A DNA stretch of 64,000 nucleotides. Origin: Selaginella moellendorffii. Lineage: Eukaryota; Plantae; Lycopodiophyta. The notes beneath the pieces were generated by a model that was not told the origin of the DNA, ran no database searches, and saw only the letters and a list, made by a program, of their open reading frames with translations. The stretch spans positions 1,863,228 to 1,927,227 of the forward strand of contig NW_003314283.1 in NCBI RefSeq assembly GCF_000143415.4, given 5' to 3'. A program made the translations under genes and the position numbers. Numbering within the stretch: position 1 is the stretch's first letter; each line of letters begins with the position of its first letter. Shown here piece after piece: positions 1-56,063 of the stretch.

Positions 1-3000
1 GGTCAGTTTACCCGTGCCTGAGGAACTGAAGACGGCTATAGAGCTTTCGAATCCAGAGAAAGCTCCAGGTGCAGCATGGAAAATGCTCAGCTGGGTCTTC
101 AACGCAATAGCGGGTGGGTCACCTGCTTCCGACTCCAAGGGCAAATGCGTTGTCGAGTACAACTGCGGCGGACTATTATTTCGAGCCGCACTACTCAAGG
201 GTGTCCCGTATGTTGCGGTGACAAACTCCATTGAAGAAGTGACTTCAATGGAGCATATAATTACAGTTGCCAAAGAAAAACAGTATCTTCTTTGCGAACC
301 TGGTGAGTACGCACTTTAAGTTTAAATGTTATCTCACAAGCTCTGTATGCAGGAGCGTGGCCACCCCCAGATGCTGAAACGGCGTTAACAGCTACTGTTG
401 AAGATACCCATGTTGGGCCGAGCTCACAACCTGCACAAGGTAAGGTCACGTGAGGCCTCACGCCATTTTGATTATAAATCGTTGTTAATATTCAGACACG
501 AGGACTGAAAAGCGCACTGGTGGCGCGTAGAAGAAGGACAAACAAACAAGCAATAGGAAAAAAGGAGGTACAAATTATATTTGCAATGGTGTGTGGTCTC
601 ATGCCATTCCTTGCAGGAGACACTTCTTCAAAGGCAAAACAGGCAAGCACCAGCCAAGCTCAAACTGACAGTGGTCATAAAAAGCGAAAGCACGTTGGAC
701 AGTCATCGGGATCAGAGGCATTTGATTCGAAAAGGAAGAAGGGCAACGAAAAGATGATAGGTAATGCCTCGCGGTTATGGCGTGTGTGCTCATGCCATTC
801 ATTGCAGATCAAGGGCTGAGTGAAAGCAGCCAGTCACCACCTCCTGACTCAGATTCCTATGGCGGACTCCCCTTCCCCAATCTCAATGGAGAGGTACAAT
901 GAATGAAGGATGCTTTTCAAGTCAGGGCCACGTTTTTCTCATCTCGTCGTCTTCGAAGGGTGCAAGAACGTGCAGAAACCATGTTAAGACAGTCGGGTGA
1001 GGATACGGTCCTAGGTTAGGCACTAAAACAGGCTATGGATGTCTTGTATTTTGAGATGGAGACTCGGCCAGATGATTTTCCCAAGATGGTCCTGGAAGAA
1101 CAAGCCATCCAGCCTGAGCAGCCTATGGAAGAAATGCAGGAGGGGGATGAGGAGCCAGAGAAAGATAATGAGCAGGAAGAGCAGAAAAACGAAGAGGAGG
1201 ACAAAGAAGAGGAGGACGAAGAAGAGGAGGACAAAGAGGACTTGGATGGTCCTCACAATGGTGACGATCACAATAACGACGACGACGATGATGACGACGA
1301 TGGCCAGCCTGAGGTGGCCAAAGAGCAGCGGAGGAAGGTCATACAAGACAAACCATCAGGTAAATAATAGTACATCCATTCCTAACCTTTTACCATTTCT
1401 AACATTGTCCATGTAGATCGCAAAGCAAATGGTAAGTAGAGATTATTCAGTTGAATTAAGATACAAACTCTAGCCTTTAGTGTCGAGGAAGGATAGTGCC
1501 AAGCAAGGGTCGAAACGTATGTCCAATCCTTCAGAATCAACAGTGCGCCCAAGTGATATCGGTCCTAGTTCCTCAATAGCAGTTGATGGTAAATACAATA
1601 TAGTCGATTCAATGTGCTAATGAGTTTGTTTTTAGTAGCCAGTAGGGAGGATACCATCTCAATCGAAGGGAGATATTTGGACATGCATATGGATCCGCCA
1701 GTGGACTCTACTTGCCTGCAAGAGTCATCAGAGCTGGTGGAGGCTACTATCCATATCAACGCCAAGCAAGCTGACCACGCTCCACTTGATGCTGCCCATA
1801 CCACTGAGTCAATCTTGTCCACGTATCCAACTGACGGTGACCAGGCGCCATTGGACCCGCATAAGGCCGCCCCAACCGCCGAGCCGGTCGTATCCTCATT
1901 TCCAACGGACTCAACGTGTGCCCAATCGTCTGACTACGCGCCGTTGGAACCTCCCTACACCGCCCCTACTGCTTGTTTGGTCATGTCCACTTTGCCAACG
2001 GAGGCACCAGCTGAAATGGCGTGTGATCACACACCATCAGAACCACCCCATGCCATTGTTGAGCCAGTTGTACCAGAGTCTACAGCTGAAATGGCATGTG
2101 CCCACACGCCATCGGATGTGATTGACCCCACATTGCAGAGGAGAGTATTTCCACCCTTCACGTTTCCTCGACCAAAACCCTCTCAATGACCATCGGGAGC
2201 ACCATTCGCTAATATTGTAGATGGTAAAATTGACTTGTACCATTTTTTATGTTGACGCATTTCATTTCAGAGTCACGGCGAAGGTACTGTATCGTTTTTG
2301 ATCTGAACGGTGTCCTTTTCTCCCATGAGCGTGGCTCGTCCTCGAATGTCACTTCACCCTCCAAAGCCTGCGGTCGCAAGTTGGTCAAAAGAGACAGATT
2401 CACATTAATCACACGGGAGAAACTGCGGGATCTAATAATGACCATGCGACACTTAAAACAGAGGGCCGGGTTCAATTTGCAATTGGGAGTTTGGACATCC
2501 ATGATGCACCACAATGCATTAACGTTGCTACAGATGATGCACGATCAAATGCGAGTAATATTACCATTTGACTTTCTCCTAACACAGGAGGATTGCTTGA
2601 CTATGGTCCATGTGAGGGGTAGCAAGCCCATCTTCGTCAAGCCAGAGGCTGTAGTGATGAACTGGACTGCTAGGTCAAGTGAAATCCTCATCATTGATGA
2701 CTCGCCGATTAAAACTGCAGCGAACATGCACACATATGCAGTGCACCCCATCTCTTGCAGTATGGAAACTAGGGAGAAGAAACCATATGTTCTGGGGGAC
2801 CTTGCAAAACGGCTTGGAGCGATGGTGATAGAGAACCAGCCAGTCCAGGAGGTGGCTGCAGAAATCAACCAAATGGCAGATGGAACGGTATATCAGAAGC
2901 CATTTGATCGGACAGACACCAATCATCATTTATGGCATGTATATTGTCTAGCCAAGCACTATCCGCATCTCCATAATCTGCTCAACCGGATGGGTTCTTC

Positions 3001-3133
3001 GACCACTGAACATGAGCGTGGACGTATTAGAGAAGAGATGGCATTACTATTGGGTTTAAATCCTGATAGTGTGGAGAGTGATGAAATTCCAAGATTATTG
3101 TATAGGCGTTGGAGGCAAAAAATAACAGTCTGA
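1..3133 (+). pseudogene. Multi-exon gene, 5' end outside window: N4/N6-MTase-like C-terminal segment, acidic/Pro-rich linker, FCP1/NIF-type HAD domain; several premature stops
   Basis: GT-AG introns at 303-352, 440-495, 568-616 and 761-807 splice the first exons in frame into ORF 1035..1367. A further intron lies at 1360-1416; exon structure between 1417 and ~1640 is unresolved. Intron 2224-2270 joins the 1614 frame to the FCP1 exon. In-frame stops at ~528, ~900, ~1017 and 2187 are TAG/TGA, consistent with C>T changes. Confidence 0.6.
2271..3133 (+). CDS. FCP1-homology (NIF/SCP-like) HAD phosphatase domain exon
   Basis: IVFDLNGVL (HAD motif I variant), LGVWTS (motif II), IFVKP (motif III Lys), LIIDDSPIKT (motif IV). 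Confidence 0.75.
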
Positions 3134-3540
3134 GATGGCATGTATTTATTTTAAAATGTAACTTATTATGGCATGGGGTTCCATGCCATTGTATTAATAT
3201 TAAAAGACAATTCTTTGAGAGGATTTGCATTATACTAGAAGTGTTACAGCATGTTATTGGAAGTCTACGAAGTTGTTTTATTAATAAGGGGAAAGTAAAG
3301 ATTGAATGGGGACTTGGGCTCCACCTAGACTCGGAGCAACTGAGCCAATATTAAAAGGATGGAAAGAAATTGGACGACGATGACAAAGAGAAGAGAGAGG
3401 TGAAGCAGTGGCAGGGGGAGGAGAAGTGATTGAGTAGACATTTCCTTGTTTAAAATAAAATGGCATGTGCCTCAATGCAGTTGAATTTTGTTATATTTAT
3501 ATACTATATAAAGGTTTGGAAACCTTATTTTACAAGTGGG

Positions 3541-19200: not shown

Positions 19201-20807
19201 TCCATAAATAAATTCATAGAGACATTTTCTCTTCACTTCCAAAATTACATCCAATCTAGATTGAAACTTCCGATTTCACCATTCTTGCATCCAGTTCTTT
19301 ATTCAACTAAAGAAAGAGTATTATTAGAGATGAAGTAGAGTTAAATATTAATCTTTTATCTATGTAAATTTATAATATATTTATGGGTTTTATATTTCAA
19401 AGCAGGTCCTTCAAGCTCACTTTGAAGTTGTGGCACTTTTCTTTTTAACCTCTACAACAACAATAGCTTTCAAATTGTGAAAAGAATCATGGCAAATTCC
19501 ATTCTTTATTGTGTGTTGGTGGTGTCTAATATGCATTGCTGCTCTATCTAAATAGCCATCCCACAACAAAAAGTAGTGCATCCTTGCATCAAAACATGCT
19601 CGACACATAGATATCACCTTGCATTTGAAATATTTAAACCCTATAGCAACCTTGTCATGCCTAGAGGGATTGATCATTGAGCCTTCAAAGAAATATATAT
19701 TCCTAGTCATTTAATGCTTTAAATATTAAGATATTAATATATGCATAATTGATTGTAAGAAAAATAATACTACTGAGATGAATGGGGTTATGAGCAAAAG
19801 GCACTAACCAATTATAACAGTTGTAACACTAATAGCTTGTTCTCCCTCTCATCTCCATGTTGTTTCCCTAAGAGAGAGTTTCATTCTTTTGTAAGAAGTG
19901 AGAGTCAAGCTTAGAGAAGTTAGTTCACACATAAAACCAATTAGATATAGCTTCTTAGACAAAGAGGTGTGTTGCTTTTGGACTAGTTTTTGAAATGGTG
20001 GATAAGGCATTTCAGAAATCTCAATCATTACAGATGGAATTGAAGGAAATTGAGTACATAAGAGATGAGGAACTTCTGTCTTCTTACAATGGGAATATAT
20101 ATTCTTCAAATTTTCACTATGTCCTTGTAAAGAACACATTAAATCTTTGTTCATAGAAGATTTATCCAATAAATATATCCTACCATTTATAAAATTAAAG
20201 TCACTAGAATCTAGGAAGCAATTGCCATCAAAGAAAATAAAAATTGTGACCATTCATTGTGACTATTGATTGTGTTAGGCACCAAGTCAAAATAATAGGA
20301 TAAAGAAAGGGCCCTACAATGAAGTGATCACCCCTTTAGTTAATTAGCTTAGGGTGTAAGGGATAGGGGATAGGATCCTAACATTGGTATCGGAGCCTAA
20401 TTCGATTCTCGTGGCTGATGAGTGGGGCAAAAATATTCTGAAGGAATATTCAACATGGTGGATCTAGAGAGAGAACCAAAGTTTAGTAGACTCTAAAAGA
20501 AGAAATACCTAAGTATGTGTTAGGATCCTATCCCTTACACCCTAAGCCAATTGACTAAAGGGGTGATCACTTGATTGCAGGGCCCTTTCTTTATCCTATT
20601 ATCCTGACCTGGTGCCTAACAATCCTCCCCCTCGTCAGGAAATGATCGTCCGCGATCATACTTAGGCCACCATCCGGTCACCATGGTCCTTCTCTTAGGG
20701 TCTACCAAACCTTGGTTCTCCCTCTAGATTCACCATGTTGAATATTCCTTCAAAATATTCCTGCCCCACTCGTTAGCCACAAGAATCGAATTGGGCTCCG
20801 ATACCAA

Positions 20808-21040
20808 TGTTATGATCCGGCGCAAAAAGACAAAGATCTAGTTGCCCTAGACTATGTTACGCCACCTCTTGAGGTTCCTCACCACCCAACCACCCCCGAG
20901 CTACCTCAAAAGCTCCACTGCACCGCCGCTCCATTGTGAGCCCTAGGGTAGGTTAAGTCCCTTACCCTAACATGCCTTAATATACCCTTGAGCCTCCCTT
21001 TGACCGATGTTGACCATGTAGTCAAAGCTGGCACCTAACA
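20808..21040 (-). repeat. Ty3 LTR-A (233 bp)
   Basis: TG..CA ends; preceded by PPT GGGGGGAAGAAT; homologous to 38688-38920, 40503-40751, 47964-48196. Confidence 0.9.
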
Positions 21041-23028
21041 ATTCTTCCCCCCCAACAAAGTCCTTGTCCCAAGGACGAGTTGTACCGGTGATCACCCTTT
21101 CTGGGGAATCCTGCTCAAGCTCCTGATCCATCTTCCACAGCCGTATACATCAAGGAGGCATTGGGCCCGTCACTCTGAGATAGTACACCTTTCAATTGGC
21201 TGACATAAAATACCGGATGAATTTTCACCTCAGCTGGCAGCCGCACCCGATAAGCCGCTTTACCAATGTGCTCCAGCACTTCATATGGACCAGCATATCG
21301 ATGGGAAAGTTTATCACTCTTCCCTGTCCGTAAAGGCACCAAGGTGTTCTGCCGGACGGCACTTGACGGAAAGATCACTCGCACAAAGACGAGATCACCC
21401 ACCTTATATTCCTGGAATTGGCGATGCTCATTGGCAAACTTCTCCGCTCTATCCTGAGCTGCTTGCAAATTCCGTTTGCACACCACCAGAATCTCATCAA
21501 GTTCTGTGGCCCGATCAGTTGCCTCGGAATCAAGCTTTTCTTGAACGTCCTTACTCAAATGCAATCCCAACTCCACCGCTATTCAAGGATGCCTTCTAAA
21601 CATCGCAAAATAAGGACTTAGCTTGGTTCCACTGTGTTGGCTATTGTTGTAAGCAAATTGCACCAACAGAAGATATAAATCCCACTGTCCTTGCCTTTGA
21701 CCAATACTACAATGTAACATATCCTCCACCACCTGATTCACACGCTCGGTTTGCCCATCTGTCTGAGAATGATCTCCACTCGAGAGTTTCAAAGTCACTT
21801 GCATAGCCTTTGCAAAGCTTTTCCAAAATCCACTGGTGAACTTTGAATCTCGATCACTAATGATGTCCTCCGGCAAACCAAAATCAGGAAAAACCTTCTC
21901 CAAGTAAACCGCAGCCAAGTCTGAGGCAGTGACAGTCTTCCGAAGAGCCAACAACCGCACATAATTCGTCAACCGATCCACTATGACCCATACTTGCTCC
22001 TTTTGCCTCTGTGTTTGTGGCAAACAAGTGATGAAGTCCATAGAGATACTACACCAACGGCTCTGAGGAATAGGTAAAGGTTGCAAAAGTCCCCCCGGCT
22101 TCTCCCGTGGCACCTTAACCCACTGACAAAGTTCGCCTGATTTACAATACTTGAGGATATCAGCTTTCATATTCCTTCAATAAAAGTTGCGCTTAATCAA
22201 CTCATACGTCTTCTTCCCCCCAAAATGACCGGCCTCTGGACGATTATGATAGTGGAATAAAACTTGAGTAATTAACGCATCCACCCGTGGCAAATATACA
22301 CGGCCATTATAGTAGAGAATCCCATCCACCAATGAGAAAGGGTCTTCCATTTGGTCTCGCAAAGAGGCCACCTCAGCATCTTGAGCCTGAGCATGCTCAA
22401 CCAACTGCCCAAACTCGCTGACCACCTTACTCAAATGATGACAAAATCGTGTTCGTAACGTCGTCACATGACGAACACGAGATAAAGCATCTGCCACCAC
22501 ATTTGATTTTCCCGGACGATGCTCAATAGGAAACTCCCCAAACTCCATGAGTTTGACCATCCAACGAGTTTGCCTAGTGTTCAACTCCTTCTGTGTGAAA
22601 AGATACACAAGTGGTTTGTGATCTGTCAACACCACAAACACTGCACCATAAAGATAGTGCCGCCACGTCTGTAAAGCATGAACAATAGAGAGTAACTCTT
22701 GCTCATATGTGGAATAACGTTGCTCCACGAAATTCAAAGTTCGACTCTCATATGCAATAGGCTGTCCCTCTTGCATGAGAACGCCTCCCAGTGCATAACC
22801 ACTCGCATCGCATGTCACCTCGTAAGGTTTCGATGGATCAGCAATGCGAAGCACTGGAGTCTCGCTCAACAATCGTTTCAACGCCACAAAACTCTCTTCT
22901 TGTGGCTTCTTCCACTCAAATGGCACATTCTTGCGTAACAACCGTGTCAAAGGAATAGCCACCTCTGCAAACTTATGCTGGAAACATCGGTAGTAACTAG
23001 CCATACCAAGAAAACTGCGCAACTCAAC

Positions 23029-24024
23029 TGTAAGCAACCAAAGGGAACGACTCTAGAGATGATCCATAGGGGTTCAAATATAAAGGGAAAGGGCCCATGA
23101 ATAAGAGTGCACCCCCTTTTCCAATCGGTCAAGGGTCTTGGGATAGTTGGAGTTAAGCGTCCTTGGGTTTGAATAGTACTGGGCTGGGTGACCTCCCGGG
23201 AAGTCCAAACTCAGGAGCTTACATTTGGTATCAGAGGGGTCTCGGGTCCGACTCTGTTGGTTGGCTAAGGGAATCACACCACATGTTGATTGACATCTGG
23301 CTGGTCCAGTTTGCTCCCGCTGGGCTCGACCTGAGGGGTAGGGTGTCAAGAGAGCGAGGCTCTCGGGAGAGCTGCGGCTCTCAGCTTCCGTTCACGAGGG
23401 CATGAACTTGCAGGGAAGCGTGGTGGATTGTAAGCAACCAAAGGGAACGATTCGAGAGACGATCCATTGGGGTTCAAATATAGAGGGAAAGGGCCCATGA
23501 ACAATAGTGCACCCCTTTTTCCAATCGGTTAAGGGTCTTGGGATATTTGGGGTTAAGCGTCCTTGGGTTTGAATAGTACTGGGCTGGGTGACCTCCCGGG
23601 AAGTCCAAATTCAGGAGTTTACATTTGGTATCAGAGAGGTCTCGGGTCCGACTCTGTTGGTTGGCTTAGGGGAATCGCACCACATGTTGATTGACATCTG
23701 GCTGGTCCAATTTGCTCCCACTGGGCTCGACCCGAGGGGTAGGGTGTCAAAAGAGCGAGGCTCTCGGGAGAGCTGCGGCTCTCAGCTTCCGTTCACGAGG
23801 GCGTGAACTTGCAGGGAAGCGTGGTGGATTGTAAGCAACCAAAGGGAACGACTCTAGAGATGATCTATAGGGGTTCAAATATAGAGGGAAAGGGCCCATG
23901 AATAAGAGTGCACCCCCTTTTCCAATCGGTTAAGGGTCTTGGGATAGTTGGGGTTAAGCGTCCTTGGGTGTGAATAGTACTGGGTTGGGTGACCTCCCGG
24001 GAAGTCCAAACTCAGGAGCTTACA
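23029..24024 (+). mobile_element. Cassandra-type TRIM tandem array (LTR-int-LTR-int-LTR)
   Basis: Three ~195-bp LTRs (23029-23223, 23429-23623, 23830-24024), TGTAAG..TTACA; PBS TGGTATCAGAG; period ~400 bp; TSD TCAAC on both sides; LTRs carry a 5S rRNA internal segment. Confidence 0.9.
23151..23206 (+). promoter_or_regulatory. 5S rRNA-derived Pol III type-1 promoter segment (box A-IE-box C) in LTR; repeated at ~23551-23606 and ~23952-24007
   Basis: AGTTAAGCGTCCTTGGG..GAATAGTACTGGGCTGGGTGACCTCCCGGGAAGTCC vs plant 5S AGTTAAGCGTGCTTGGGCGAGAGTAGTACTAGGATGGGTGACCTCCTGGGAAGTCC. Confidence 0.85.
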
Positions 24025-27000
24025 TCAACCACTGTAGTCAGTGTAGGCCAGTTTTCCACCACAGCCACCTTCCTTAGATCCGTCTTGACACCCTTAGATG
24101 TCACAATATGGCCTAGATATTCCACCTCTGACTTTGCAAATTCACATTTGCTCTTCTTCGCATAAAGTTTGCTGTCACGAAGTAACAAAAGAACCTTGCG
24201 CAAATGCACCCTATGCTCCTCCATATTTTTGCTAAAAACAAGAATATCATCCAAGAAAATCTCCACAAAGTCATGAAGATAACGCCCAAATACCTTCGTC
24301 ATCAACCGAGTAAATGTGGCCGGTGCATTTGTCAAACCAAACGGCATAATTGTAAACTCAAAATGTCCGAAGCTTGTGTTGAATGCCGTCTTGGAGATAG
24401 ATGCATCATCCATTGCAATCTGATGATATCCACTCCTGAGATCAATCTTGGTAAACACTCGTGCTTCACCAAGTTTGTCCAGGATATCATCCACACGTGG
24501 CATCGGCATCTTGTCCTTCACTGTCTTCTTGTTTAAAGCACGGTAGTCAATACACATCCGCATTGAACCATCTTTCTTCTTCACAAGCAAGACTGGAGCA
24601 CCAAACGGAGACTTACTTAGCTGAATAAATCCAAACTCAAGTAACTCCTTGACTTGTCGTTGAACTTCTTGCTCCTCCGCATAACTTAACCGGAATGGAC
24701 GCCAGTAAATGGGCTGTGTCCCCGGCTGCAATGTAATCCCATGCTCCACACCTCGTAATGGAGGCAATCCATGAGGAAGTTCAGATGGAAAAACATCAGA
24801 AAACTCATCAAGTACATCCCGTACTGCTGCTTCTCCCCCATACGTGCCTTGGTCCCCCAAGTCACGAACAAACAGCAAGTAACTTGAAAGTGCTTTTCCA
24901 TTACGACAAGCCCACTTCAAAGATGTAGCAGAGAGCATAACAACTGGTGGTTGAACACCCTCGCCAAACCACACATCTTTAACGCCACCGTACTCCAGCG
25001 AGATATGCTTAATGCTCCACTTTATCTCTAGATCCACCTTCACCAACCATGGCATCCCAAGAATGAGATCCACACGATGGATATCTGCGAGATAAAAAGT
25101 CTCCACAAGTGTGGTTTTGCCAACGAACACTTCCAGCCCCTCGACACAAGCATCGAAATGCTGAGCAGAGGTAGCCGCACCTTCCACTGTGTATGGAAGA
25201 ACTCCACGTGTGTTCAGGCAATGCTCCGCAACAAACTTTGCCGAAACAAAGTTGTCATCGCTCCCACTATCCAGTAAAATCCGCACTGGATCGCCACGGA
25301 ACACGCCCTCCAGCATTAAAGCTGATTCACGCGTATCCTCAAGCTCCATCTTGTTCCACACATAGTTGAGTTGACGAGCAACGATCGAAAGTCGCTTCCT
25401 CCGACCGGAATGGTCATTCTCCTCATCCTCACGCTGCAAAGTTTGCAACTTTTTAGTAACTGACTTACCGTGAGAAGATGATTGGCCATTCTTCTTGTCC
25501 TGCTGCTTGTTCTTCAACTACGGACAATCAGCCTTGTAGTGTCCAAGTTCGCCGCAATGATGACAACCCTGTCTATAATTCTTCACAAATAACTTCTGCT
25601 TCTTGGACCAGCATCTAAAGTAGTCACCACCGACTTCAACTTGTGATGCTTGTTCCCATCCTTGTGTCCACGGTGATCATCACGACGATTCTCGACAGAA
25701 GGACTCCGCGAACGCTTGCAAGACTTGTGCTTGTCATTGTCAAGTCAACGAGCCATCAAAGAGCTCCTCCAAACTCTTTGTAGGCTGAGAATGACACAAG
25801 TGTTGCTGCATGCTCTCACTATGTAGGCCATCAATGAAGTAGGACTTGTTCTGATCTGGATCCTTCGTTGGAACACGACTAATCAAGCGAGTAAGCTTCT
25901 CAATATAATCCCCAAGCATCATTTTCCCTTGCTGGAAATGGTGAAGTTCTGTATGAGCATTCTCCACATCGTAATGAGGGGCAAAATGTAAACGGAAAGC
26001 AGCCTCAAACTCATCCATGGTAGACACTGGTGGTTTCTTATCCGCAACACGGGACTCCTCAAGCCAATTCCACCATTGAAGACCTGCATCACGCAAAACC
26101 ATCGGAATAGCCACTAAAGCCTCTGCATCTGGAGTTCCTCTAGCAGCCAAGAACTTCTTCACATTGGCTAGCCAAGCGAGACACTCGTCCACACCACCAT
26201 CACCGGAAAAAGTTGGAATCTTGAGTCGATCTACCAAAGAAGGCTTACTTGGAGCGCTACCCCATCCAGCCTCGAGTGCCTCAACCTGCCCATGCATGGT
26301 ATCCATCATGCCATGCATCTCGTCTTGTATCTCTTGCTGATTTCAGTTAAGGGCTCGCAACTCATGAACCACATCTTGAATGGTCCAAATCTCCGTAGGA
26401 TTCCAGCGTTCAGCTTGGTCGGCCATTGCAACCAACTGCTCCGATACCAATGTTAGGATCCTATCCCTTACACCCTAAGCCAATGGACTAAAGGGGTGAT
26501 CACTTGATTGCAGGGCCCTTTCTTTATCCTATTATCCTGACCTGGTGCCTAACAATATGATCGCAGACAATCATTCCCTAATAAAGGGAGAATTGTTAGG
26601 CACCAGATTAAGATAATAAAATAAAGAAAGGGCCTTGCAATCAAGTGATCACCCCTTTAGCCAATTGGCTTAAGGTGTAAGAGATAGGATCTTAACAGAT
26701 TGTGACTATTGATTTTTAGGGTTTTACAGTTAGGGTTTGAACAGGGAAAGGCAAGAGAAAAGTGTTTCAATCTCACAATGCACTTCAAGACACTCCTCAA
26801 TCAATATGATAGACACTCTCCAAGACACTCCTTAATCAATTGCTCCCAATGAATTGCCATCTCCTTGCTTTATTTCTTTCATTAGAGAAATAATGTTTTT
26901 TTTCTTGATTTTTGTTTTCTCTTGAACAATAGAAAGGATGGAGATGTCAGTTCTTGTATAAACTTACATCTCCTAGCATTCTATTTTGTTTTTTATTCAG

Positions 27001-36550: not shown

Positions 36551-37116
36551 GACTGCCCTAAACCTAATTGTGCGGTGGTGATTAAAAGGAATATGCCTCA
36601 ACGTTTCTTTTCGTCACCTAATCAGTCAACTATGGTATAAAGGTTTTCACAAAAAAAAAGAAAATATTTTGTGATGGCTATCCATAGTGGTTTATAAAAA
36701 CAAAGTTCATTAGAACAAAAGCAAAGTTCATCGTTGTGACTGCCAAGGTGGAGCTGTCGACCTGAATTGCCAGGGAGCTGGTACTCTGTACTAGGAAGGA
36801 GGTGCTAAAAGTACTTCCTTTCCTTCAACCTCGTGGATTAAAATAATTTCCAGCTTTGTAAAAGGTTGGAAACACTGGAAGTGCACCAGAAAACATGATG
36901 TACTTCCAGTTTTTTGCAAAAACCCATATTAATAAACCCTAGACTATGGCTTCTTCTTTCATGGCAAGATGGGTGCAGGTTTGAGTGCAGCGACCCGGGC
37001 ATCTGGATCACAGCCTCCTTGAAGTAGCATCTTCCCGAACAGCTCCAGAGCCATTCTAGCGTCCCCACCTCATGGCAGTATGGCTACATGTTAGGCACCA
37101 GGTCAGGATAATAGGA

Positions 37117-38613
37117 CCACTTGTGTATCTTTTCACACAGAAGGAGTTGAACACTAGGCAAACTCGTTGGATGGTCAAACTCATGAAGTTTGGGGAGTTT
37201 CCTATTGAGCATCGTCCGGGAAAATCAAATGTGGTGGCGGATGCTTTATTTCGTGTTCGTCATGTGACGATGTTACGAACACGATTTTGTCATTAGTTGA
37301 GTAAGGTGGTCAGCGAGTTTGGGCAGTTGGTTGAGCATGCTCAGGCTCAGGATGCTGAGGTGGCCTCTTTGCGAGACCAGATGGACGCTCCTTTCTCATT
37401 GGTGGATGGGATTTTCTACTACAATGGCCGTGTCTATTTGCCACGGGTGGATGCGTTAATTACTCAAGTTTTATTCCACTATCATGATCGTCCAGAGGCC
37501 GGTCATTTTGGGGGGAAGAAGACGTATGAGTTGATTAAGCGCAACTTTTATTGGAGGAATATGAAGGCTGATATCCTCAAGTGTTGTAAATCATGCGAGC
37601 TTTGTCAGCGGGTTAAGGTGCCACGGGAGAAGCCGGGGGGACTTTTGCAACCTTTACCTATTCCTCAGAGCCGTTGGTGTAGTATCTCTATGGACTTCAT
37701 CACTTGTTTGCCACGAACACAGAGGCAAAAGGAGCAAGTATGGGTCATAGTAGATCGGTTGACGAAGTATGTGCGGTTGTTGGCTCTTCGGAAGACTGTC
37801 ACTGCCTCAGACTTGGCTGCGGTTTACTTGGAGAAGGTTTTTCCTGATTTTGGTTTGCCGGAGGACATCATTAGTGATCGAGATTCAAAGTTCACCAGTG
37901 GATTTTGGAAAAGCTTTGCAAAGGCTATGCAAGTGACTTTGAAACTCTCAAGTGGAGATCATCCTCAGACGGATGGGCAAACTGAGCGTGTGAATCAGGT
38001 GGTGGAGGATATGCTACGTTGTAGCATTGGTCAAAGGCAAGGACAGTGGGATTTATATCTTCCGTTGGTGCAATTTGCTTACAACAATAGCCAACACAGT
38101 GGAACCAAGCTAAGTCCTTACTTTGCGATGTTTGGAAGGCATCCTCGAACAGTGGTGGAGTTGGGATTGCATTTGAGTAAGGACGTTCAAGAAAAGCTTG
38201 ATTCCAAGGCAACTGATCTGGCCACAGAACTTGATGAGATTCTGGTGGTATGCAAACGGAATTTGCAAGCAGCTCAGGATAGAGCGGAGAAGTTTGCTAA
38301 TGAGCATCGCCAATTCCGGGAATATAAGGTGGGTGATCTCGTCTTCGTGTGAGTGATCTTTCCGTCAAGTGAGCGGCGGAACACCTTGGTGCCTTTACGG
38401 ATAGGGAAGAGTGATAAACTCTCCCATCGATATGCTGGTCCATATGAAGTGCTGGAGCGCATTGGTAAAGCGGCTTATCGGGTGCGGCTGCCAGCTGGGG
38501 TGAAAATTCATCCGGTATTTTATGTCAGCCAGTTGAAAGGTGTACTATCTCGGAGTGACGGGCCCAATGCCTCCTTGATGTATACGGCTGTGGAAGATGG
38601 ACCAGGAGCTTGA
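37117..38613 (+). pseudogene. Ty3 RNase H end + integrase (copy 1)
   Basis: GHFGG..CELC zinc finger, SMDF, SDRD, DGQTE, GPY; stops at ~37294 and ~38350. Confidence 0.9.
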
Positions 38614-38687
38614 GCAGGATTCCCCAGAACGGGTGATCACCGGTACAACTCGTCCTTGGGACAAGGACTTTGTTGGGGGGGAAGAAT

Positions 38688-38920
38688 TGTTAGGCGCCAG
38701 CTTTGACTACGTGGTCAACGTCGGTCAAAGGGAGGCTCAAGGGTATATTAAGGCATGTTAGGGTAAGGGACTTAACCTACCCTAGGGCTCACAGTGGAGC
38801 GGCGGCGCAGTGGAGCTTTTGAGGTAGCTCGGGGGTGGTTGGGTGGTGAGGAACCTCAAGAGGTGGCGTAGCATAGTCTAGGGCAACGAGATCTTTGTCT
38901 TTTTGCGCCGGATCATAACA
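38688..38920 (+). repeat. Ty3 LTR-A
   Basis: TGTTAGG...CATAACA after PPT; followed directly by mid-pol sequence with no PBS. Confidence 0.9.
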
Positions 38921-40428
38921 CAGATCACAAACCACTTGTGTATCTTTTCACACAGAAGGAGTTGAACACTAGGCAAGCTCGTTGGATGGTCAAACTCATG
39001 GAGTTTGGGGAGTTTCCTATTGAGCATCGTCCGGGAAAATCAAATGTGGTGGCGGATGCTTTATCTCATGTTCGTCATGTGACGATGTTACGAACACGAT
39101 TTTGTCATCATTTGAGTAAGGTGGTCAGCGAGTTTGGGCAGTTGGTTGAGCATGCTCAGGCTCAGGATGCTGAGGTGGCCTCTTTGCGAGACCAAATGGA
39201 AGCTCCTTTCTCATTGGTGGATGGGATTCTCTACTACAAGGGCCGTGTCTATTTGCCACGGGTGGATGCATTAATTACTCAAGTTTTATTCCACTATCAT
39301 GATCGTCTAGAGGCCGGTTATTTTGGGGGGAAGAAGACGTATGAGTTGATTAAGCGCAACTTTTATTGGAGGAATATGAAGGCTGATATCCTCAAGTATT
39401 GTAAATCATGCGAGCTTTGTTAGCGGGTTAAAGTGCCACGGGAGAAGCCGGGGGGACTTTTGCAACCTTTACCTATTCCTCAGAGCCGTTGGTGTAGTAT
39501 CTCTATGGACTTCATCACTTGTTTGCCACGAACACAGAAGCAAAAGGAGTAAGTATGGGTCATAGTAGATCGGTTGATGAAGTATGTGCGGTTGTTGGCT
39601 CTTCGGAAGACTGTCACTGCCTCAGACTTGGCTGCAGTTTACTTGGAGAAGGTTTTTCCTAATTTTGGTTTGCCGGAGGACATCATTAGTGATCGAGATT
39701 CAAAGTTCACCAGTGGATTTTGGAAAAGCTTTGCAAAGGCTATGCAAGTGACTTTGAAACTCTCAAGTGGAGATCATCCTCAGACGGATGGGCAAACTAA
39801 GCATGTGAATCAGGTGGTGGAGGATATGCTACGTTGTAGCATTGGTCAAAGGCAAGGACAGTGGGATCTATATCTTCCGTTGGTGCAATTTGCTTACAAC
39901 AATAGCCAACACAGTGGAACCAAGTTAAGTCCTTACTTTGCGATGTTTGGAAGGCATCCTCGAACAGCGGTGGAGTTGGGATTGCATTTGAGTAAGGACG
40001 TTCAAGAAAAGCTTGATTCCGAGGCAACTGATCTGGCCACAGAACTTGATGAGATTCTGGTGGTATGCAAACGGAATTTGCAAGCAGCTCAGGATAGAGC
40101 GGAGAAGTTTGCTAATGAGCATCGCCAATTCCGGGAATATAAGGTGGGTGATCTCGTCTTCGTGCGAGTGATCTTTCCGTCAAGTGAGCGGCGGAACACC
40201 TTGGTGCCTTTACGGATAGGGAAGAGTGATAAACTCTCCCATCGATATGCTGGTCCATATGAAGTGCTGGAGCGCATTGGTAAAGCGGCTTATCGGGTGC
40301 GGCTGTCGGCTGGGGTGAAAATTCATCCGGTATTTTATGTCAGCCAGTTGAAAGGTGTACTATCTCGGAGTGACAGGCCCAATGCCTCCTTGATGTATAC
40401 GGCTGTGGAAGATGGACCAGGAGCTTGA
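38921..40428 (+). pseudogene. Ty3 RNase H end + integrase (copy 2)
   Basis: Near-identical to 37117-38613; two stops. Confidence 0.9.
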
Positions 40429-40502
40429 GCAGGATTCCCCAGAAAGGGTGATCACCGGTACAACTCGTCCTTGGGACAAGGACTTTGTTGGGGGGGAAGA
40501 AT

Positions 40503-40751
40503 TGTTGGGCGCCAGCTTTGACTACGTGGTCAACGTTGGTCAAAGGGAGGCTCAAGGGTATATTAAGGCATATTAGGGTAAGGGACTTAACCTACCCTAG
40601 GGCTCACAGTGGAGCGGCGGCGCAGTGGAGCGGCGGCGCAGTGGAGCTTTTGAGGTAGCTCGGGGGTGGTTGGGTGGTGAGGAACCTCAAGAGGTGGCAT
40701 AGCATAGTCTAGGGCAACGAGATCTTTGTCTTTTTGCGCCGGATCATAACA
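40503..40751 (+). repeat. Ty3 LTR-A with 16-bp internal duplication, followed by tRNA-iMet PBS (40753-40763)
   Basis: GTGGAGCGGCGGCGCA duplicated; TGGTATCAGAG. Confidence 0.9.
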
Positions 40752-40774
40752 TTGGTATCAGAGGATTGGTTGCG

Positions 40775-43437
40775 ATGGCCGACCAAGCTGAACGCTGGAA
40801 TCCTATCATCGATGGTGGTGCCGACGATGGTGCCGACGTAGCTGCGGAGATTTGGACCATTCAAGATGTGGTTCATGAGCTGCGAGCCCTTAATAAAAAT
40901 CAGCAAGAGATGCAAGACGAGATGCATGGCATGATGGATACCATGCGTGGGCGTGTTGAGGCACTCGAGGCTGGACGGGGTAGCGCTCCAAGTAAGCCTT
41001 CTTTGGTAGATCGACTCAAGATTCCAACCTTTTCCAGTGATGGTGGTGTGGATGAGTGTCTCGCTTGGCTAGCCAATGTGAAGAAGTTCTTGGCTGCTAG
41101 AGGAACTCCAGATGCAGAGGCTTTAATGGCTATTCCGATGGTTTTGCGTGATGCGGGTCTTCGATGGTGGAATTGGCTTGAGGAGTCCCGTGTTGCGGAT
41201 AAGAAATCACCAGTATCTACCATGGATGAGTTTGAGGCTGCTTTTCGTTTACGTTTTGCCCCTCATTACGACGTGGAGAATGCTCGTACAGAACTTCGCC
41301 ATTTCCAGCAAGGGAAAATGACGCTTGGGGATTATATTGAGAAGCTTACTCGCTTGATTAGTCGTGTTCCAACGAAGGATCCAGATCAGAACAAGTCCTA
41401 CTTCATTGATGGCCTACATAGTGAGAGCATGCGGCAACACTTGCGTCATTCTCAGCCTACAAAGAGTTTGGAGGAGCTCTTTGATGCGGCTCGTCGACTT
41501 GATAATGACAAGCACAAGTCTCACAAGCGTTCGCGGAGTCCTTCTGTCGAGAATCGTCGTGATGATCGCCATGGACACAAGGATGGGAACAAGCATCACA
41601 AGTTGAAGTCGGTGGTGACTACCTCGGATGCAAAGGGGTCCAAGAAGCAGAAGTTCTTTGTGAAGAATTATAGACAGGGTTGTCATCATTGCGGCGAACT
41701 TGGACACTACAAGGCTGATTGTCCGCAGTTGAAGAACAAGCAGCAGGACAAGAAGAATGGCCAATCTTCTTCTCACGGTAAGTCCGATACTAAAAAGTTG
41801 CAAACTTTGCAGCGTGAGGAGGAGGAGAACGACCATTCCGGTCGGAGGAAGCGACTTTCGATCGTTGCTCGTCAGCTCAACTGTGTGTGGAACAAGATGG
41901 AGCTTGAGGATACGCGTGAATCAGCTTTAATGCTGGAGGGCTCCGTGGCGATCCAGTGCGGATTTTACTGGATAGTGGGAGCGATAACAACTTTGTTTCG
42001 GCAAAGTTTGTTGCGGAGCATCGCCTGAACACATGTGGAGTTCTTCCATACACAGTGGAAGGTGCAGCTACCTCTGCTCAGCATTTCGATGCTTGTGTTG
42101 AGGGGCTGGAAGTGTTGGTTGGCAAAACCACACTTGTGGAGACTTTTTATGTCGCGGATATCCATCGTGTGGATCTCATTCTTGGGATGCCATGGTTGGT
42201 GAAGGTGGATCCAGAGATAAAGTGGAGCATTAAGCGTATCTCGCTAGAGTATGGTGGCGTTAAAGATGTGTGGTTTGGCGAGGGCGTTCAACCACCAGTT
42301 GTTATGCTCTCTGCTACATCTTTGAAGCGGGCTTGTCGTAATGGAAAAGCACTTTCAAGTTACTTGCTGTTTGTTCGTGACTTGGGCGACCAAGGCACAT
42401 GTGGGGGAGAAGCAGCAGTACGGGATGTACTCGACGAGTTTTCTGATGTTTTTCCATCTGAACTTCCTCATGGATTGCCTCCATTACGAGGTGTGGAGCA
42501 TGGGATTACATTGGAGCCGGGGACACGGCCAATTTACCGGCATCCATTTCGGTTAAGTTATGCGGAGGAGCAAGAAGTTCAGCGACAAGTCAAGGAGTTA
42601 CTTGAGTTTGGATTTATTCAGCCAAGTAAGTCTCTGTTTGGTGCTCCAGTCTTGCTTGTGAAGAAGAAGGACGGTTCAATGCGGATGTGTATTGACTACC
42701 ATGCTTTAAACAAGAAGACAGTGAAGGACAAGATGCCGATGCCACGTGTGGATGATATCCTAGACAAGCTTGGTGAAGCACGAGTGTTTACCAAGATTGA
42801 TCTGAGGAGTGGATATCATCAGATTGCAATGGATGATGCATCTATCTCTAAGACGGCATTCAACACAAGCTTCGGACATTTTGAGTTTACCATTATGCCG
42901 TTTGGTTTGACGAATGCACCAGCCACATTTACTCGGTTGATGACGGAGGTATTTGGGCGTTATCTTCACGAGTTTGTGGAGATTTTCTTGGACGATATTC
43001 TTGTTTTTAGCAAGAATATGGAGGAGCATAGGGTGCATTTGCGCAAGGTTCTTTTGTTACTTCGAGACAGCAAACTTTATGCGAAGAAGAGCAAATGTGA
43101 ATTTGCAAAGTCGGAGGTGGAATATCTAGGCCATATTGTGACATCTAAGGGTGTCAAGACGGATCCAAGGAAGGTGGCTGTGGTGGAAAACTGGCCTACA
43201 TCGACTACAGTGGCCGAGTTGTGCAGTTTTCTTGGTATGGCTAGTTACTACCAACGTTTCCAGCATAAGTTTGCAGAGGTGGCTATTCTGTTGACGCGGT
43301 TGTTACGCAAGAATGTGCCATTCGAGTGGAAGACGCCACAAGAGGAGAGTTTTGTGGCGCTGAAACGATTGTTGATCGAGGCTCCAGTGCTTCGCATTGC
43401 TGATCCATCGAAACCTTACGAGGTGACATGTGACTAA
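40775..43437 (+). pseudogene. Ty3 gag-PR-RT, 3' truncated at start of RNase H, 4-bp deletion frameshift near 41941
   Basis: CHHCGELGHYKADC knuckle, LLDSGS, FLDD. The copy at 48220 shows gag-PR are normally one frame. Confidence 0.92.
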
Positions 43438-43477
43438 GTATGATCGCGGACGATCATTCCCTGACGAGGGGGAGGAT

Positions 43478-43871
43478 TGTTAGGCACCAGGTCAGGATAA
43501 TAGGATAAGGAAAGGGCCCTGCAATCAAGTGATCACCCCTTTAGCCAGTTGGCTTAGGGTGTAAGGGATAGGATCCTAACAATGGTATCGGAGCCCAGTT
43601 CGATTCTCGTGGCTGACGAGTGGGGCAAGAATATTCTGAAGGAATATTCAACATGGTGGATCTAGAGGGAGAACCAAGGTTTGGTAGACCCTAAGAGAAG
43701 GACCATGGTGACCGGAGGGTGGCCTAAGTATGATCGCGGACGATCATTCCCTGACGAGGGGGAGGATTGTTAGGCACCAGGTCAGGATAATAGGATAAGG
43801 AAAGGGCCCTGCAATCAAGTGATCACCCCTTTAGCCAGTTGGCTTAGGGTGTAAGGGATAGGATCCTAACA
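43478..43871 (+). mobile_element. Young TRIM-B unit (104-bp identical LTRs, 186-bp internal)
   Basis: LTRs 43478-43581 and 43768-43871 identical by eye; PBS TGGTATCGGAGC; PPT GAGGGGGAGGAT. Confidence 0.92.
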
Positions 43872-45904: not shown

Positions 45905-46501
45905 GACAAATCGGTGGGACAGAGGGATGAACCTCAGCGGATTGTAGCAGCAAGGCTACTTTGCCACTTACAGTACCCCGTCCCCTATTTAAGTCTTCTG
46001 CAAAGGATTTATCTCCTCGACCGTTCGAAATTGGATTTCCAAGCCGCGCCCCCGGGGCAGCATCGGCCCCGAGGGACGGCACTTGCGTCATGTGTTCTCG
46101 GGGGAGCACGGGGCCCCCCTAACCGTAATCAGGTAACAGCTGAGGAGGTAGAGAGCACCGCATCTAGCACGGATTCTCACTTAGAGGCGTTCAGTCATAA
46201 TCCCATGCATGGTAGCTTCGTGCCACTGGCTTTTCAACCAAGCGCAATTACCAATTGTGCGAATCAACGATTCCTCTCGTACTAAGTTGAATTACTATTG
46301 CGGCACAGCTCATTAGTAGGGTAAAACGAACCTATCTCACGACAGTCTAAACCTAGCTCACGTTCCCTATTGGTGGGTGAACAATCCAACGCTTGGTGAA
46401 TTCTGCTTCACAATGATAGGAACAGCCGACATCGAAGGATCAAAAAGCAACGTCGCTATGAACGCTTGGCTGCCACAAGCCAGTTATCCCTGTGGTAACT
46501 T
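45905..46501 (-). rRNA. Orphan, mutated 3' fragment of 25S/26S rRNA gene
   Basis: Reverse-complement matches such as CCACAAGCCAGTTATCCCTGTGGTAACT, CCGACATCGAAGGATCAAAAAGCAACGTCGCTATGAACGCTTGG, TAGAGGCGTTCAGTCATAATCC; scattered transitions relative to the consensus. Confidence 0.93.
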
Positions 46502-47262
46502 CCAGACAGCCTTTTTAGCAGCCAAACACGCATGCCTTGAACGACTAAACCTGCAAGAAGATCAGCACCATCGTTGGTGGAAGGTGGATGAATCGATCAT
46601 ATGCACCCTCCCCAACATGGCATCGGGACTAGTCTTCGAGGCAGGACAGGCTGGACGCTTGTACCCCATCGTTACCCCCGAGTACGAGGACCTCCCCGAC
46701 ATGAGCAGAGCTAAACCGATCAGAGTGATTCAAATGGAGAAAAAAACTGCCAACGTTGATCCTTTGATCCCAGAAAACCAATATGCTCGCCTCTACTGGT
46801 TCCGCCAACAAACCTTGGACGAACTCAAGTGGGATCCCGCAGAGTGGCATTGGAGGGGAACCACGTGCAAGGACTTCTTCCAGTACGAGATCAAGCCAGG
46901 CCGCAAACTGATCAGGGTGCCGACTCGATCCTCCCTCATCCGGAAAGCAAAGGCCCAACAGATCCATTCCAGGAACCACTCACACAGCATCAACAAGATC
47001 TGGAAGGGGCGCTGGTCAGCTAAGAACCGCTACTTAATGTGGCTGGCCCAACAAGAACGTCTCCCATCTCTGGTCACCATACATCTTCCGAACACAGCCT
47101 GCAAGACCTGTGGCGCCACAGAAACACAGCGACACATCTTATGGGAATGTCCGGCAGCACAGAAAGTATGGGAAGGTGCAGCAGTGGTACTAAAACGAAC
47201 GTCAACCGGAGGAGCTGCAATCACATACGAATCGGCGCTCTGGGGTAGCTTCATCTAGGGAG
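46502..47262 (+). mobile_element. L1-like LINE (family 2) ORF2 3' fragment with zf-RVT
   Basis: W..AQQERL...CKTCGATETQRHILWECPAAQKVW. Confidence 0.85.
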
Positions 47263-55640: not shown

Positions 55641-56063
55641 GGCATAGTATAATCTAGGGAGATTAGATCTTTGTCTTTTAGCACTGGATCTTAATATTGA
55701 TAAAGAAAAGGCCCTGTAATAAAGTGATCACCCCTTTAGCCAATTGGCTTAGGGTGTAAGTGATAGAATTCTAACATTAGTATTGGAGTAGTTCCATTTT
55801 CGTGACTGACAAATAAAGTAAGAATATTCTAAAGGGATATTTAACATGGTGGATATAAAGGGAGAACCATGGTTTGGTAGACCCTAAACAAAGGACAATG
55901 ATGACCAAAGGGTAGCCTAGGTATGATTGTGGATGATCATTCCCTAGTGAGGGAAGGATTGTTAGGCACCAAGTCAAAATAATATAATAGAAAAAAGGCC
56001 TTGCAATAAAGTAATCACTCTTTTAACCAATTGGCTTAGGGTGTAAGGGATAGAATCTTAGCA
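55641..56063 (+). mobile_element. Old TRIM-B copy preceded by a decayed Ty3 LTR-A 3' end
   Basis: 55641-55699 matches the LTR-A end (TAGATCTTTGTCTTTT..GGATC.TAA.A), then TRIM-B partial LTR, internal and LTR. Confidence 0.7.

Follow-up and report, generated by a model that had tools for sequence, protein, structure and literature searches.

A TRIM retrotransposon and a gypsy element joined at the primer-binding site within a single insertion in Selaginella moellendorffii

How did a gypsy element with only one long terminal repeat (LTR) come to lie between the two LTRs of a terminal-repeat retrotransposon in miniature (TRIM)? This is the arrangement found on the minus strand, from 26554 to 20518, of a 64,000-nt stretch of contig NW_003314283.1 of Selaginella moellendorffii (the window, whose positions serve as coordinates below). 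We refer to this TRIM/gypsy co-integrate as C1, to the 104-nt TRIM LTR as sLTR and to the 233-nt gypsy LTR as LTR233. Read along the minus strand, C1 consists of sLTR, a primer-binding site (PBS), gag, protease (PR), reverse transcriptase (RT), RNase H and integrase (INT), a polypurine tract (PPT), LTR233, a second PBS, the TRIM internal region, a second PPT and another sLTR (Table 1). It measures 6,037 nt, or 5,036 nt once a nested Cassandra-like TRIM is subtracted. An initial annotation of this DNA had proposed the same succession of parts, and we found all of them again where it had placed them.

Pfam matches followed one another along the minus strand in gypsy order (Retrotrans_gag, RVP_2, RVT_1, RT_RNaseH, Integrase_H2C2, rve and SH3_Tf2-1). 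The gypsy unit is complete in extent, yet its gag-pol frame is broken by stops at 25742-25520, 22179 and 21585, and the Cassandra insertion divides its RT/RNase H region. The carriage of a whole autonomous unit, as first described, therefore holds for the length of the cargo but not for its reading frame or its freedom from other elements. The two outer sLTRs differed at 1 of 104 positions, as had been claimed, and were 96-97% identical to the free TRIM copies at 43.5 kb. A Ty3/gypsy element would normally carry a copy of its LTR at either end and be flanked by a 5-bp target-site duplication (TSD), whereas C1 has a single, internal LTR233. This LTR has a PPT on one side and a PBS on the other, and no TSD was found around it (no duplicated 5-mer). 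The single gypsy LTR and the lack of an inner TSD show that C1 is not a nested insertion, in agreement with the initial annotation.

Table 1. Features of C1, of its target TRIM and of the other chimeras. Positions are those of the window except where another locus is named.
Feature	Position	Strand	Remarks
TSD copy	26555..26559		ATATG on +, CATAT on -; intact TRIM paralogue across the site reads CTAAGTATGATCGC
5' TRIM LTR (sLTR, SmoRetroS4-type)	26451..26554	-	104 nt, TG..CA, TGTTAGG..CCTAACA
5' PBS, initiator methionine (iMet) type, TTGGTATCGGAGC	26438..26450	-	TRIM alleles G8, C12; gypsy leader AGTTGGTTGC from nt 13
gag open reading frame (ORF)	25740..26318	-	Retrotrans_gag (Pfam); in-frame stops follow, 25742-25520
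Protease and reverse transcriptase	24025..25517	-	ended by the Cassandra insertion
RT tail, RNase H, start of integrase Zn domain	22177..23023	-	in-frame stop 22179 at end
Integrase core and SH3 domain	21115..22170	-	in-frame stop 21585; without chromodomain
Gypsy PPT GGGGGGGAAGAAT	21041..21053	-	
Sole internal gypsy LTR (LTR233)	20808..21040	-	233 nt
Middle PBS TTGGTATCGGAGC	20795..20807	-	TRIM alleles; directly follows GGATCATAACA of LTR233
TRIM internal region	20622..20794	-	about 173 nt, non-coding, ends with PPT GAGGGGGAGGAT
3' TRIM LTR (sLTR)	20518..20621	-	103/104 identical to 5' sLTR
TSD copy	20513..20517		GTATG on +, CATAC on -
Host TRIM, left part (LTR, PBS, internal region)	20273..20512	+	older copy that received C1
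Host TRIM, right part (rest of internal region, 3' LTR)	26560..26697	+	host TSD GATTG at 20268-20272 and 26698-26702
Cassandra-like TRIM, 996 nt	23029..24024	+	three 195-nt LTRs, two internal regions of about 205 nt, PBS TGGTATCAGAG
C2, TRIM/gypsy mosaic	37089..43871	+	perfect TSD CTACA; source of canonical LTR233-PBS-gag and sLTR-PBS-TRIM joints
C3	47964..50062	+	LTR233-PBS-gag-PR tail to tail with inverted TRIM 5' half; perfect TSD AACGT
L001 element	L001 8583-12878 (GL377627.1:876002-880297)		perfect TSD GCTTT

The target of the insertion was itself a TRIM. C1 is flanked on the minus strand by CATAT and CATAC, a match at 4 of 5 positions, which is weak when taken alone but is strengthened by an uninterrupted TRIM paralogue. 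Intact TRIM copies read CCTAAGTATGATCGC across the insertion site, and the host copy reads CCTAAGTATG, the insert and then ATATGATCGC. GTATG is therefore the duplicated target, the pair GTATG/ATATG given in the initial annotation is a genuine TSD, and the 6,037-nt block was inserted as one unit. The near identity of the outer LTRs (103/104), taken with the TSD verified in the TRIM paralogue, likewise shows a single integration. The host TRIM retains an LTR (20273-20383), an internal region in two pieces (20384-20512 and 26560-26593) and a second LTR (26594-26697). Its LTR pair is 85.6% identical, and the 55.7-kb TRIM copy shows about 80% identity with those in C1 and C2. Since free TRIM copies are older than C1, C1 is derived and is not the ancestor of the TRIM; an origin of the TRIM by deletion from C1 was rejected on this ground.

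The sequence of C1 has changed unevenly. Changes private to C1 were mostly C-to-T or G-to-A, and 14% of ancestral CpG sites had changed, as against 1-3% of other sites, a pattern that fits decay driven by methylation. CpG is entirely absent from the 104-nt TRIM LTR. The interior of C1 has 2.8% private changes, mostly C-to-T at CpG; in a test of whether it might have decayed before integration, 4.1 changes would be expected in the two TRIM LTRs after correction for sequence context, where one was seen (P = 0.085).

We then considered the identities of the two partners. Free TRIM units at 43478-43871, 20273-26697 (the host of C1) and 55699-56063 have the layout of a 104-nt LTR, an internal region of about 186 nt and another 104-nt LTR. 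They show the features of a TRIM: short TG..CA LTRs, a PBS, a PPT, no coding capacity, a length under about 1 kb and a 5-bp TSD. In size and LTR length (104 + 186 + 104 = 394 nt) the small element matches SmoRetroS4, a S. moellendorffii TRIM of 393 bp with 104-bp LTRs, for which the published reference copy is ADFJ01000100:60349-60741 (Gao et al. 2016, PMC4717578, Table S16). LTR233 belongs to the gypsy family itself: it stands immediately before PBS-gag at 40751 and 48196, follows a PPT at 38688 and 40503, and is the 5' LTR of gag-pol at 40503, at 47964 and at L001, an independent S. moellendorffii locus on GL377627.1 (GCA_000143415.2). Our sample comprised four gypsy loci from one genome. 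LTR233 is truly terminal, adjoining the TSD, in the chimera C3 and in L001, and no sampled copy has LTR233 at both termini.

L001 was reached through the protein XP_024545268.1 of S. moellendorffii, the only close match among 1.8 billion representative proteins in an exhaustive search. Protein searches with the gag ORF and with a 544-aa gag-PR ORF returned no match, and those with the RNase H-INT ORF returned no relative above 61% identity.

The bodies of the two LTRs are unrelated, and the TRIM and the gypsy family share only cis signals, namely the LTR termini, the PBS core and a G-rich PPT. The common LTR start comprises the first 13 nt or so (TGTTAGGC.CCAG) and the common LTR end roughly the last 11 nt (GGATC.TAACA). 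A parasite and its helper would be expected to share signals in this way, and because the LTR termini, the iMet PBS and the G-rich PPT are common to both, the gypsy family is likely to be the helper of SmoRetroS4. The primer is presumably the initiator methionine tRNA (tRNA-iMet), in which we take a U to stand opposite PBS nt 8 as in plants generally. A tRNA-iMet gene, sought in the window to fix the primer sequence, was not found there. Judged against the Arabidopsis tRNA, the TRIM at 20795-20770 and at 43583-43610 seemingly resembles the complement of the tRNA-iMet 3' end over about 25-30 nt, with mismatches, and thus beyond the 12-nt PBS.

Both heterologous joints of C1 lie at the iMet PBS, as the initial annotation had stated. 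With slashes separating the parts, the canonical gypsy joint reads ...GGATCATAACA / TTGGTATCAGAGGATTGGTTGCG and the canonical TRIM joint reads ...GGATCCTAACA / (A or T)TGGTATCGGAGCCCAGTTCG. The 5' joint of C1 is sLTR...CCTAACA / TTGGTATCGGAGC / AGTTGGTTGCA, and its middle joint is LTR233...CATAACA / TTGGTATCGGAGCCCAATTCG. Both fall within the sole block common to the two parents, TAACA / TTGGTATC.GAG, which is made up of the LTR end and the iMet PBS. The gypsy copy at L001 has the leader GAGGAGTTGG; AGTTGG is therefore a gypsy variant, which places the 5' crossover of C1 between nt 12 and nt 13 of the PBS. At the middle joint, the crossover lies between LTR nt -6 and PBS nt 8. The gypsy family's own 5' PBS has A at nt 8 and G at nt 12. 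The TRIM alleles, G at nt 8 and C at nt 12, are present in both PBS copies of C1 and in the middle PBS of L001, that is, in all three of the copies that adjoin TRIM sequence. Three of the eight heterologous joints that we saw fall in this PBS block of about 18 nt.

The L001 element runs in the order LTR233, PBS, gag-pol, PPT, LTR233, PBS, TRIM internal region and sLTR. Its 5' PBS, TTGGTATTAGAGG, is of the gypsy type (A8, G12) and its middle PBS, TTGGTATTGGAGCCC, is of the TRIM type (G8, C12). The element is old, its two LTR233 copies being 84% identical. As the LTR233-PBS-TRIM joint is present at this unrelated locus, the joint recurs. In L001, one TSD copy adjoins a gypsy LTR and the other a TRIM LTR, so this element was not built in place after integration; the occurrence of chimeras with unlike ends inside one TSD indicates that the chimera class forms before integration. 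The pol region of L001 also carries an inversion of about 100 nt and a deletion of roughly 850 nt.

Two further chimeras were found in the window. C2 begins with only the initial 28 nt of sLTR, followed by two tandem units that each consist of one and the same 3' pol segment and LTR233; it continues with a truncated PBS-gag-pol, the terminal 44 nt of the TRIM internal region, sLTR, the TRIM internal region and sLTR. The tandem pol-3'/LTR233 units of C2 are 98% alike, and the LTRs of the two-unit TRIM array at its end are identical. Two of its illegitimate joints fall within pol, 11 nt apart (equivalent to C1 positions 22626 and 22615). In C3, 11 filler nucleotides occupy the inner join and two LTR 5' ends face outward; C3 looks as though two different cDNA ends had been used in a single concerted integration, after which repair joined the inner ends.

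From the anatomy of C1, its single integration, the recurrence of its joint and the PBS alleles, all of them observed, we infer the co-packaging of two RNAs and an order of strand transfers. C1 is probably, though well short of certainly, a three-LTR chimera of SmoRetroS4 and the gypsy family that was made before integration, in the reverse transcription of co-packaged RNAs, and was then inserted once by integrase. The TRIM minus-strand cDNA would be finished up to its PBS. Its 3' end would be the complement of the PBS, a mimic of the 3' end of the tRNA primer, and could anneal to the PBS of a co-packaged gypsy RNA. Synthesis would pass through gypsy U5-R, a second strong-stop transfer would lead to the gypsy 3' R, and U3, PPT, pol and gag would be copied back to the gypsy PBS. 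This would give one continuous minus strand corresponding to PBS-gag-pol-PPT-LTR233-PBS-TRIM internal-PPT-sLTR. Plus-strand strong-stop DNA from the TRIM PPT (sLTR-PBS) would then transfer to the far PBS and provide the 5' TRIM LTR, as in C1; transfer of the gypsy LTR233-PBS strong-stop DNA instead would give the form found at L001. The route has only one abnormal step and gives a full LTR233. Because TRIM cDNA acting as primer predicts a TRIM-type middle PBS, the middle PBS copies of C1 and L001 fit such priming.

Several observations weigh against this scheme. The 5' PBS of C1 has the TRIM allele G8, whereas the simple model predicts a PBS of the gypsy or tRNA type there, and none of the three pre-integration routes considered here explains G8 simply. 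It could mean that the gypsy parent already had such a PBS, that a further switch took place where the PBS ends on its 3' side, or that the PBS was inherited from the element instead of the tRNA; one contig of another copy appears to read LTR233...GAGC-ATTGG, which is C12 in a gypsy copy. The middle joint is present at two loci only, which may represent independent events or the descendants of one old chimera, and all four sampled gypsy copies end in a TRIM LTR, which could mean that a chimeric lineage propagates and not that the event happened repeatedly. Among three DNA contig sets (Logan; contigs of 80-316 nt) compared with 20600-26590 of the window, no independent contig spanned a C1 joint; the only joints in those contigs were canonical ones of other copies, LTR233-PBS-gag and TRIM-PBS-sLTR. 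In one RNA run, coverage of the same interval was almost nil. Co-packaging of the TRIM and gypsy RNAs is itself an assumption.

The initial annotation had favoured a reciprocal plus-strand transfer, in which each strong-stop DNA (an LTR with its PBS overhang) anneals to the 3' PBS of the other minus strand, after which sealing of one joint and strand displacement at the other leave a three-LTR product. The heterologous three-LTR co-integrate, its entry as one unit and the position of its joints in the shared LTR-end/PBS block all stand; the reciprocal transfer itself does not follow from them. It would place both joints at the PBS, within a single TSD and between near-identical outer LTRs, and the L001 form can be read as the other resolution of the same intermediate. 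However, it requires the 5' end of the gypsy minus strand to be ligated to the 3' end of the TRIM minus strand, a step outside the normal course, and it predicts a 5' PBS of the tRNA or gypsy type and a mixed middle PBS, where all three copies are of the TRIM type. With only three PBS copies, these alleles lend the cDNA-priming route a weak and modest preference, and we regard reciprocal transfer as unlikely. A DNA recombination outside the chromosome seems more improbable still. Here a one-LTR gypsy circle, or a linear cDNA, would have recombined in the manner of Campbell with an unintegrated TRIM cDNA, through the shared block of about 13-18 nt formed by the LTR end and PBS, and the product would have integrated. 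The cargo of C1 is exactly what this predicts, a one-LTR gypsy copy that is circularly permuted and opened at the PBS, and recombination before integration has been proposed for rice complexes (10.1101/452573). But 13-18 nt is very short for homologous recombination, and a reciprocal crossover would put the two joints at the same point, whereas one lies 3' of nt 12 and the other 5' of nt 8, so that an additional conversion would be needed. The L001 form, with its 5' LTR233, would also require another substrate.

A different possibility concerns history and is compatible with any founding mechanism: the PBS-joined chimera may have arisen once, with C1, L001 and perhaps C2 as descendants copied in trans, and with free TRIMs and TRIM-LTR gypsies such as SmoLTRA4 as by-products of deletion between PBS or PPT repeats. 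The TRIM LTR at the end of every sampled gypsy copy speaks for such a lineage, as does the fact that one deletion would derive the right half of C2 from a 3' half like those of C1 and L001. With a TRIM LTR at each end C1 could replicate as a unit, and Gao et al. read the large element as the progenitor of the TRIM (PMC4717578). Set against this are the free TRIM copies older than C1, the unlike ends of L001, which preclude its replication as a unit by the standard route, and the finding of no convincing derived variant common to C1 and L001, the latter being heavily decayed. We consider a propagating lineage fairly unlikely. An origin after integration (by nesting with deletions or by unequal crossing-over in place) or a repeat mis-join in the Sanger assembly is very improbable. 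The region is rich in repeats and no independent contig covers the joints; but for two exact PBS joints to arise with no inner TSD, two deletions would each have to be precise, the TSD and the flanking host TRIM agree on both sides, the same joint is found on another scaffold (L001), and a block of 13-18 nt is far below the length of a Sanger read. We rejected ordinary nesting with deletions for C1 because of its one LTR233, its lack of an inner TSD and the two precise deletions required, and we rejected recombination in place because L001 cannot fit it.

Assembly before integration, which we favour for C1, has precedents within single families. Complexes with three LTRs that are flanked by a TSD and have near-identical outer LTRs have been ascribed to template switching of co-packaged RNAs of the same family (Sabot & Schulman 2007, PMC1950507), and a survey in rice found TSDs at 45 of 63 complexes and proposed pre-integration recombination and LTR swapping (Zeng & Sun 2018, bioRxiv 10.1101/452573). 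Like C1, template-switch complexes have three LTRs, two internal domains and one 5-bp TSD, and their outer LTRs are the most alike. By contrast, their partners belong to the same family, their joints lie in the LTR/R and their three LTRs are homologous, whereas C1 joins a 394-nt TRIM to a coding gypsy element at the PBS.

Elements in which a coding body is bounded by TRIM-type LTRs have also been described. SmoLTRA4 of S. moellendorffii (ADFJ01000078:22401-26773) is a gypsy element of 4373 bp with two 104-bp SmoRetroS4-type LTRs and a 1218-aa ORF, and OsajLTRA10 of rice (AP003234:140844-149347) has a cargo of about 8 kb between duplicated 25-bp stretches of LTR end and PBS; Gao et al. took both to be progenitors from which TRIMs arose by deletion (PMC4717578). 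SmoLTRA4 resembles C1 in having a gypsy coding body between 104-bp TRIM-type LTRs. Its ORF is intact and no internal foreign LTR has been reported in it, whereas the C1 polyprotein is interrupted by stops and C1 has an additional LTR233-PBS-TRIM internal module. OsajLTRA10 shares with C1 the insertion of its cargo at the PBS. When these two elements are compared with C1 through their published descriptions, the older free TRIMs and the separate gypsy LTR point the other way from the progenitor reading. The initial annotation had recognized that TRIM LTRs might be the normal LTRs of a Ty3 subfamily, which would undo its reading; SmoLTRA4 touches on this but leaves the internal gypsy LTR of C1 unexplained. 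It also makes plausible the suggestion that such co-integrates are a route to LTR swapping. In the SARE/SNRE system of soybean, helper and parasite reportedly swapped LTRs by recombination linked to reverse transcription. Its recombinants have two LTRs, whereas C1 has three and a PBS joint, and no three-LTR intermediate with a PBS joint is known to have been described there.

Three-LTR complexes with a TSD and 'autonomous partners' of TRIMs with TRIM LTRs (SmoLTRA4 and OsajLTRA10) were thus already known; new here are the joining of two unlike families with an LTR of the helper inside, the location of the joint at the PBS, the recurrence of that joint and the prospect that the supposed progenitors may be recombinants. 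Which autonomous elements mobilize TRIMs, and where TRIM LTRs come from, are open questions in the field. A chimera that entered as one unit is physical evidence of an encounter between the two RNAs or cDNAs before integration, for which a shared particle is the simplest setting, and it points to this gypsy family as the one that helps SmoRetroS4. The PBS joint offers a concrete route for LTR swaps between parasite and helper, which in soybean and rice were inferred without an intermediate. It also suggests that the published TRIM-LTR 'autonomous partners' merit re-reading. Tentatively, PBS-guided joining of cDNAs may be a regular side path of reverse transcription in this genome, with co-integrates resolving into TRIM-LTR gypsies and gypsy-LTR TRIMs. 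If so, SmoLTRA4 and perhaps OsajLTRA10 would be recombinant descendants rather than ancestors of TRIMs, and PBS-joined chimeras would be a general marker of which helper packages which TRIM, Cassandra included.

The Cassandra-like TRIM nested in C1 has its own TSD at 23024-23028 and 24025-24029 (TCAAC on the plus strand, GTTGA on the minus strand). Each of its LTRs gave a sub-threshold match to 5S rRNA (28-34 bits against a gathering score of 38). It is an array of the kind described as tandem TRIMs or multi-LTR Cassandra (Gao et al. 2016; Yin et al. 2014, PMC4079214); such arrays are homologous, come from one TRIM family and have no coding partner, whereas C1 includes a coding gypsy partner. 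The outer LTRs of this Cassandra-like element are 96.9% identical, and the middle LTR has 93.3% identity with each of them; such a pattern has been proposed as a hallmark of template-switch complexes.

Two other observations concern the remainder of the window. At 55641-56063 on the plus strand there is an old TRIM copy (about 80% identity) in which the 5' LTR lacks its first 26 nt; the missing LTR start is replaced by some 54 nt similar to the LTR233 3' end, together with TTG, forming another joint at an LTR233 end. Between two of the retroelement chimeras and outside any rDNA array, the minus strand at 45908-46553 carries part of a eukaryotic large-subunit rRNA, which matched Rfam with 448 bits over model positions 2389-3399, with gaps.

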